Shown in pieces: positions 30,643-63,995 of a stretch of DNA of 64,000 bases. Origin of the DNA: Blastocystis sp. Blastoise. Taxonomy: Eukaryota; Protista; Bigyra: Opalinata. Within the stretch, counting starts at the first letter, position 1. Every line of letters begins with the position of its first letter. The notes beneath the pieces are model-generated. The model was given only the letters and a program-made list of their open reading frames with translations, did not search any database and had not been told where the DNA came from. The stretch is from positions 372,001 through 436,000 of the forward strand of contig JBBPEB010000006.1 in the NCBI GenBank assembly GCA_039096225.1. Direction: 5' to 3'. Both the position numbers and the translations under genes were made by a program.

Positions 30643-38287
<7,645 letters not shown>

Positions 38288-61402: not shown

Positions 61403-63995
61403 TTAAATAGCAAATCGTTTAATAATACCATCAAAAAGAAGATTATCATAGACTCTAATATTATCTAATTTATATTCATTAAGACCGGATAAATTAATCA
61501 CTTGATATTCAAAATATTCAGTTGATTGGGCAATTGTACGGAATTCAAGTTCAGTTATGTACGAGAATTCAGCGTAATAGGATGAAGGAATAAATATAAT
61601 ATATGTAATAAATATAATAAATATAATATATATATAAGGAATAAAGGATATCTTTGTCTTTTGAGGAATAAGTTGATCTAATTTAATCGCGGGAGTTTCA
61701 ACAAATGCTTTTCGTACGGAATCTTGTACATGAGGATCCATAGTAAATGAGTATACTCATTAAGAATGTATATATATAATATATGTAATAATAATAATAA
61801 ACATAATAATAATAATAAATATAATAAATATAATAAACATAATAATAATATATAAGGATATATAGGGACGAATATCTTCAACTCTTTCAATAAGTCTACC
61901 TCCTGAGTATATATCACCAAAAGAACATTTCTTACCACTATCACCACAATTAAACATAGGTAATACTAATACTCTATTTAATAAACGAGATATTTTGATA
62001 GCATTCAATAAACGAAGCTCTTGAGCATCTACATAATATAATATAATATAATATAATATAATATAATAAAAATAATATAATAATAAAATAATAAAAATAA
62101 TAAAATAATAAAATAATAAAAATAATAAAAATAATAAAAATAATAACAATAATAAAAATAATAACAATAATAACAATAATAACAATAATAAAAATAATAA
62201 AAACAAAATAGTAATATATATACCAGGTTGATCAGGAATAAAAGGATTTTCATAAATAAGTAATTTCTTATCAATATTATAATAAATAGGAAGAAGAGGA
62301 GTATATAGATTCATATCCATCATTCTGAATAACTTGTCACTTTCAGTTTGAAGGTCGTTATGAATGACAACGGCTACATCATTCTCTATATACATAATAA
62401 TAATAATAATAATAAAATGAATTCTATATCAATATATATATACCTTTATCAAGTTTATAAATATTATACATATCAAATAAAGTAGCACCACTAACAACAG
62501 TATCTAATATCTATATAATAATAATATATAATAATAATAAACATAATAATAAACATAATAATAATATATAATAATAATAAAACATAGAATAGAACATACT
62601 TCAGTAATAATACCACTGTCTTCTTTAGCTTCATATAATTTAATAAGAAGAGAGGGAGATTTTTGTAATTCATGCATATAACTAAGAGTCATAATTGTAG
62701 GATGAAATATACTATATAGAATATATAACAATTATTGATTACGAATATAAATCTTTTAATAGAAATGAATGGATATCTACAATGAATTCAGATATAAAAT
62801 AATATATATATATACATGAAAGCATAAGCAAGATTCGTAATAGGAAAAGAAGGAACATGTATATCACAATCATAACAGGAATAAGAACGAGGAAGAGGTT
62901 TTACAAGTGAAACATCAGCACCAATGAAAGTAACACTATAACCGTCTTCTAATATCTATATAATAATAATAATATTAATAATAATAATAAAATTATAAAG
63001 CTATATTAATATACCAATAAGAATGATAATAATAAACAAAAAAAAAAAATAACAAACAACAAAATAATAATAATAATAATAAAAACTAAACTTTTACAAG
63101 AATCACCTATATATATATAAACATACAGCAGAAATCTTTTGAATAACAATAGAAGAGAGTGGGTCACCAATAGTACCTTGATCATCTTCAGACTTCTTCA
63201 ATAAAACCACGGGAATTCGATCAAGTTTTAAGCGATCAAATACTTCAGGAACAGTAACATATATAATAATATTCCATAATCCATTACGTAAAACTATATT
63301 GTCATAAAATGAATAAAATAATTCCATATTTTGATAAGGGAAGAAATATATAACAATTTGCTTAGAAATAGCTAATTGTGTTATAAAATCATTTTCTTCT
63401 AAACTTTTTTCTGTAATATATTGTGGAATACTAGCTTTTATACGAGAAACAACAGGATTATCTAACTATTCAATATTAAAAAAAAAAATAAATTAAAATT
63501 ATATATAAATAAACATACGACAGGAATAACTAATAAAGAAGATTTAGCAAGAACATCATTATTCTTTTTCTCTTTAATATCTACACAATTAATCATAATT
63601 AAAATATTATAAAATATTAAAAATACTTTGAAGATAACTTTCCTTATTTTCAAAATTATTATCTAAATAAAATAATTATTAGTTTTAAATTATCATTGTT
63701 TGTATTCGAAATAAAACTATAAAAGAAGAAACATACATTGATATAAACCTCTCTTAATAGTAGTCATCTTTAATTGATTCATACCACTCATCATACGAAT
63801 ACTAGCAGGAATGAAAACAAAAACCATGATAAAAGCAACAAATCCACCAATAAGCAAATAGGCGTTCTTCTTGAGTTTCAATCTTTTAAGACCTGATTCG
63901 TTTAACCAGATTTGAAATTGACGATTCAAATTTGAAGCAACTCTCTGAATGGATTCTATTATATCAGTAAAAGATGTTTGGCTTCTTTGATTCAT
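61403..63995 (-). CDS. Type II membrane nucleotide-diphospho-sugar transferase (GT77-like glycosyltransferase), 10 exons, last two introns AT-AC
   Basis: N-terminal TM anchor, ILEDGYSVTFIGADV (GT77 L..GY.V...D.DV pattern), LLNAIKISRLLNRVLVLPMFNC and RPY|SFTMDPHV. Confidence 0.6.
61574..61651 (-). other. U12-type AT-AC intron (78 nt, in frame, stop-free)
   Basis: aca aag | ATATCCTTTA ... TTCCTTCAT cctattAC | gct gaa; interior has the low-complexity T/A composition of introns here. Confidence 0.8.
61751..61861 (-). other. U12-type AT-AC intron (111 nt)
   Basis: ccc tat | ATATCCTTAT ... TTCTTAAT gagtatAC | tca ttt; contains an in-frame stop, so it must be removed. Confidence 0.9.

Follow-up and report, generated by a model that had tools for sequence, protein, structure and literature searches.

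The U12-type introns of animals and plants are mostly of the GT-AG kind, are biased against phase 0 and usually occur once per gene, at positions that are conserved across kingdoms; ion-channel and information-processing genes are among those that carry them. As a class, minor introns tend to be old and rare and to disappear slowly, and the ancient ones average ~22% phase 0 (PMC10639083). Their gain is rare, with Physarum polycephalum as the exceptional case, and Blastocystis is among the few suspected makers of new minor introns (PMC10639083). In Blastocystis ST1, 346 U12 introns were reported in 319 genes, and the minor snRNAs and the proteins of the minor spliceosome are all on record (Gentekaki et al. 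2017, PMC5608401). A later independent survey counted 253 minor introns of 42 bp on average, 77% of them AT-AC and 49% in phase 0, and suggested that Blastocystis minor introns may be recently gained (Larue and Roy 2023, PMC10639083). According to the same survey, a few of the minor introns of ST1 are shared with an animal, and turnover is rapid, 11 of the 12 compared ST1 minor introns being absent in B. hominis. Blastocystis isolates from tortoises have longer introns and AT-rich genomes (23.1% GC in Rus-B; PMC12129017); U12 introns receive no mention in the paper on the Rus-B genome.

The gene analysed here lies on the minus strand of a stretch of DNA of 64,000 nucleotides (the window; GC 15–34%) and runs from an ATG at 63995 to a TAA stop at 61405–61403, with the open frame kept to the stop. 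Its features, together with the matching positions in a relative (contig L006, described below), are as follows.

61403..63995, minus strand: whole gene; 10 exons, 1578 coding nt = 526 codons including TAA; model based on a table of exon and intron phases and on exon-wise tblastn to L006
61862..62028, minus strand: exon 8; 167 nt, last codons R-P-Y abutting the AT donor, 76% identical to L006:8757-8921
61751..61861, minus strand: intron 8; 111 nt, phase 0, AT-AC, predicted U12-type, terminal AC at 61752-61751
61854..61861, minus strand: intron 8 donor ATATCCTT, at the first intron base
61759..61766, minus strand: intron 8 putative branch box TTCTTAAT, 8 nt to the intron 3' end, which ends in AC
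61652..61750, minus strand: exon 9; 99 nt = 33 codons, between both minor introns; orthologue L006:8978-9076 of equal length
61574..61651, minus strand: intron 9; 78 nt, phase 0, AT-AC, predicted U12-type, terminal AC at 61575-61574
61644..61651, minus strand: intron 9 donor ATATCCTT, at the first intron base
61582..61590, minus strand: intron 9 putative branch box TTCCTTCAT, 8 nt to the 3' end; same 9-mer in intron 9 of the orthologue
61403..61573, minus strand: exon 10; 171 nt including TAA, matching L006:9132-9296 with E=9e-18

Introns 1–7 start with GTATGT or GTATAT, finish with TAG and have a GC content of 5–16%. By contrast, introns 8 and 9 are very probably, to judge from their sequence, genuine U12-type AT-AC introns of a single-copy gene for a type II membrane protein, which were already U12-type in the common ancestor with the relative. 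Both donors fit the extended U12 consensus /[AG]TATCCTT, and the branch boxes, TTCTTAAT in intron 8 and TCCTTCAT in intron 9 and in the relative, are near the U12 consensus TCCTTAAC and lie within ~8–20 nt of the 3' end. The box of intron 8 departs from TCCTTAAC at two positions, both of which form G-U wobbles with U12 when paired by hand, and the box of intron 9 has one mismatch to the consensus, adjoining the branch adenosine. Removal of the AT-AC introns restores the reading frame in the window gene as well as in the orthologue. An initial annotation of this DNA had placed both introns, the 99-nt exon between them and the branch points, and all of these coordinates proved correct on the minus strand; the common donor, the AC ends and the U12-type branch points that it described are likewise there, ATATCCTT and the boxes having been located in both introns. 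Its reading of the introns as U12-type AT-AC is supported by these sequence signals, by minor snRNA genes (including a U4atac candidate) and by conservation in the orthologue.

As in ST1, the U12 introns of this gene are AT-AC, carry the ATATCCTT donor, are in phase 0 and short, and share their gene with another, as is also found in some ST1 genes; as in ST1, too, the genome holds four minor snRNAs, of which U4atac is here a candidate. Unlike in ST1, where the mean is ~42 nt, they measure 111 and 78 nt, consistent with the longer introns of tortoise isolates (PMC12129017), and, whereas 11 of the 12 compared ST1 minor introns are absent in B. hominis, these have been kept across a deep split. 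The resemblance to Physarum polycephalum consists in many minor introns beyond the classical conserved genes and several per gene; unlike in that species, a massive expansion or an altered splicing system is not in evidence here. With animal and plant U12 introns they share the donor and branch consensus and the snRNA partners, but both are AT-AC, in phase 0 and adjacent, and they interrupt a gene without detectable outside homologues. The initial annotation had started from the premise that minor introns usually occur once per gene and mostly in old, conserved information-processing genes. That premise fails for Blastocystis on the figures of PMC5608401 and PMC10639083: since hundreds of U12 introns, mostly AT-AC and rich in phase 0, are on record for the genus, a gene with two AT-AC introns in phase 0 is typical of Blastocystis and not exceptional.

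The comparison with a relative carries most of the argument. A full HMMER scan with exon 3 over 1.84 billion representative proteins returned one true match, a 100-residue ORF fragment with 61% identity; a second match was a spurious repeat protein and was discarded. The fragment maps to three Logan contigs (L006, L007 and L008), which are mutually identical in the gene region and have a GC content of 42–43%. The relative's gene spans L006:7293-9305, and all 10 of its exons match window exons, with an overall amino-acid identity of ~56% (our own sum of exon-wise tblastn rows). The nine intron positions and their phases are equal in the two genes by a check on coordinates only, seven of the eight internal exons are identical in length and the coding total is 1578 nt in both species. 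Introns 1–7 of the relative are GT-AG, six of them being 32–36 nt long, and only introns 8 and 9 are AT-AC, as in the window:

L006:8922-8977: relative's intron 8; 56 nt (window 111), AT-AC, donor ATATCCTT, TCCTTCAT 13 nt before the 3' end
L006:9077-9128: relative's intron 9; 52 nt (window 78), AT-AC, donor ATATCTTT, TCCTTCAT 9 nt before the 3' end

Outside these signals, neither intron can be aligned with its window counterpart. The residues that flank the junctions are conserved: at the first, R-P-Y/H precedes and S-F follows; at the second, K precedes and x-E-x-S follows. Since it measures 52 nt, which is not a multiple of 3, the relative's intron 9 is not readable through. The relative has nearly twice the GC content of the window genome and introns that are three-fold shorter; in a fragment of pyruvate phosphate dikinase (PPDK) it differs by 35–40% of residues, and in the intron-bearing protein by about 44%. 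The comparison rests on this one relative, whose taxonomic position we infer from the figures in PMC12129017 to be beyond the AT-rich tortoise clade or on its margin. Because the same positions carry U12 signals in a relative at ~56% protein identity, both introns are older than the divergence of the L006 lineage and are not a recent gain. Two adjacent AT-AC introns thus seem to have been kept as U12-type across a split over which GC went from 23% to 43% and introns became ~three-fold shorter. Some of the unusual minor introns of the genus are thus stable and very probably under selection, in contrast with the turnover between ST1 and B. hominis; the general picture of minor introns is unchanged by the present gene.

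A side observation concerns intron length. Within L006:7543-9128, the relative's U12 introns (56 and 52 nt) exceed six of its seven U2 introns (32–36 nt), which points to a greater minimum length of minor introns in those Blastocystis whose introns are short.

Motif counts by themselves do not single out the two donors. The octamer RTATCCTT is not enriched in the 64-kb window, with 14 occurrences observed against 11.6 expected, and the remaining 12 copies have coding-like or otherwise non-intron-like surroundings, without a plausibly placed branch box and AC and without a switch in composition. As the count is near expectation, significance comes from position and conservation and not from motif numbers; both intron donors are placed exactly at the end of the coding frame. 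A count of U12 density over 214 kb used a crude filter that was nonspecific, the reversed control motif matching more often than the real one. At window positions 34768 (minus strand), 35102 (plus strand) and 31212 (minus strand), ATATCTT or GTATCTT stands at a switch from coding- to intron-like composition, and these may be minor introns with a variant donor.

It is very unlikely that the two segments have nothing to do with the minor spliceosome, that is, that the major spliceosome acts at other or non-canonical sites, or that intron 9 is translated as an insert of 26 residues. Intron 8 contains an in-frame stop and must therefore be removed. A GT-AG alternative exists for it (donor −8, acceptor −5) and keeps the frame, but its donor is poor and it has no counterpart in the relative. 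Intron 9 contains no G at all, so that neither a GT-AG nor a GC-AG intron is possible there, and enumeration of splice sites found none of either kind within 36 nt. When the site pairs within 36 nt that keep the frame were all listed for the two species, the AT-AC pair at shift 0/0 was the one solution that they have in common, and this held for each of the two introns; the alternative sites are not shared. Translation of intron 9 is a reading that its sequence allows, since it is in frame and stop-free, and retention would add 26 very hydrophobic residues without truncating the protein. By our own composition estimate, however, 26 codons without a stop arise by chance in about 1 in 6 cases in G-free sequence, and the open frame was given no weight. 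In the orthologue, moreover, intron 9 is 52 nt long and has an in-frame stop, which makes a conserved retention switch unlikely, and conservation is confined to the donor and branch motifs, the remaining intron sequence having diverged. A sequence search for transcript-derived protein fragments of the gene found none; part of the gene is present in two sequencing-run sets, one of them a poly-A gut metatranscriptome.

The components expected for U12-type splicing were searched for with Rfam models in the window genome (33,340,088 bases in 34 contigs). U11, U12, U6atac and a U4atac candidate are encoded in the same genome as the introns. The U11 gene (62.9 bits; 5' end AUAAAGGGC) and the U6atac gene (63.8 bits) score above their Rfam cut-offs. 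The U12 gene scores 46.8 bits, a little below the cut-off of 53, at full model length and with its branch-pairing box AGUAAGGAAA intact. The U4atac candidate was missed at the default threshold, and K-turn and Sm-site features can be seen in its Rfam alignment. Its 5' end pairs with the genome's own U6atac at −32.7 kcal/mol, against −14.7 ± 3.3 for shuffled sequences, none of 500 of which reached this value. The two genes of this pair are located as follows.

L003:1501-1617, minus strand (G000:C21:544821-544937): U6atac, Rfam match
L024:1501-1635, minus strand (G000:C8:151033-151167): U4atac candidate, 29.7 bits, below the Rfam gathering threshold

If the canonical pathway operates here, the U11 5' end AUAAAGGGC would pair with the donor AUAUCCUU, and the U12 box AGUAAGGAAA with the branch box UUCCUUCAU or UUCUUAAU, leaving the branch adenosine bulged ~9 nt from the 3' AC. 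U4atac/U6atac would join next and catalyse removal of the intron. At 78–111 nt, recognition would probably take place across the intron and not across the exon, and the splice signals have probably been held by selection since the split from the GC-richer, short-intron relative. Two further observations concern the snRNA genes. Just 5' of its conserved GAGAGAAGG box, U6atac reads GAGCC, versus GAAAGG in the Rfam consensus and in human; the GAAAGG stretch of human U6atac pairs with donor CCUUU, yet donors here keep the usual consensus. A tRNA gene lies at L024:2078-2149, ~450 nt from the U4atac candidate.

How the two introns arose is a separate matter. The initial annotation had proposed a lineage-specific gain. 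Nothing supports a gain confined to this genome or the tortoise clade, all nine introns being at identical positions in the relative, and we regard such a recent gain as most improbable. The gene is lineage-restricted, as a recent gain would have it, and an exact 18-mer common to introns 8 and 9 could hint at intron copying: its two copies, at 61774-61791 and 61594-61611 (minus strand), are the only ones in the window, and the 3' halves of the introns align at 39 of 45 positions as far as the branch box. Against this, introns 8 and 9 are no more alike than intron 9 and the GT-AG intron 7 are (score 36 against 33), the relative's two minor introns are alike in their signals only, and the relative has U12 signals at the same positions despite ~56% identity, 43% GC and introns of 32–56 nt. 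The idea that introns 8 and 9 are copies of each other was rejected, as TA-rich low complexity explains their similarity, intron 7 scoring as high.

A second possibility, which we consider unlikely but well worth weighing, is deep retention, in which the gene is an old, fast-evolving glycosyltransferase, its introns come from the early eukaryotic minor set, and its homologues have diverged too far for exon-wise detection. That minor introns are mostly old and rarely gained, and that a few in ST1 are conserved with an animal (PMC10639083), would agree with it, as would the GT-A-like character of exon 3 (PF03407, 0.88) and the weak PF10250 signal in exon 8, through which the gene may belong to old families. 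Yet exon 3 found a single relative among 1.84 billion representative proteins, word-indexed searches and metagenome scans added nothing, and the introns are in the C-terminal part of the gene, where homology to outside proteins was not seen. Both introns, moreover, are AT-AC and in phase 0, while ~22% of ancient minor introns are in phase 0; in this they resemble the minor introns peculiar to Blastocystis more than the ancient ones. The searches made turned up no homologue outside the two lineages, which favours creation within Blastocystis. We infer that creation somewhere along the Blastocystis lineage, and not in this genome, is the most likely origin, with a chance that comes close to even. 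Spelled out more fully, and a shade more tentatively, the gene may have arisen within the Blastocystis lineage, both introns having been created there as U12-type and then kept since the deep split. If creation in Blastocystis is true, the gene would be a concrete and datable case of minor-intron creation, almost undocumented outside Physarum, and Blastocystis would be a natural system in which to learn how minor introns get made.

The product begins with a short N-terminus that has a basic patch, followed by a hydrophobic anchor of ~20 residues, all encoded by exon 1 and kept in the orthologue. The short N-terminus and single anchor, as judged by inspection, point to type II membrane topology. 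A glycosyltransferase-like identity (GT-A/GT77-like or O-FucT-like) is a lead. In both species, exon 8 matches the beginning of PF10250 (O-FucT) below threshold, with 19–21 bits against a cut-off of 31.5. The neighbours of exon 3 in a protein language model are all GT-A glycosyltransferase families, at 0.86–0.88, with PF03407 the nearest at 0.88. Exon-wise Pfam scans, in which the joined protein was not the query, gave nothing above a curated cut-off and no match to PF03407. A DxD motif is absent: both genes, that of the window and the orthologue, have G-A-D-V at its expected place in exon 4. The fold model of exon 3 has a mean pLDDT of 57 and an alternating strand-helix pattern, and Foldseek returned no match at E≤0.001. 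The glycosyltransferase label given to the gene by the initial annotation thus retains the sub-threshold leads from PF10250 and the language model, but it reaches no Pfam cut-off and lacks a DxD motif.

All protein searches were made exon by exon and never with the joined protein, so sensitivity to remote homology was limited. Within this scope, a profile search with exon 3 returned only the same fragment of the relative, scans of metagenomes with the exon 8 and exon 3 alignments and word-indexed protein searches yielded no further relatives, and a PDB sequence search with exon 8 gave chance matches only. Paralogues of exon 3 or exon 8 were not found in the gene's own genome. The gene is nearly an orphan, with one other lineage among 1.84 billion representative proteins, yet that lineage has the same exon structure.

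The surroundings of the gene were compared as well. A large gene downstream on L006 has no match in the window, and PPDK adjoins the gene in L007, whereas the PPDK of the window genome is multi-copy with none on the window's contig. The PPDK N-terminal domain has at least nine full matches in the window genome, 60–65% identical to the relative's copy, on contigs C1, C4, C5, C8, C29, C32 and C33, and PPDK thus forms a large multi-copy family in this genome.
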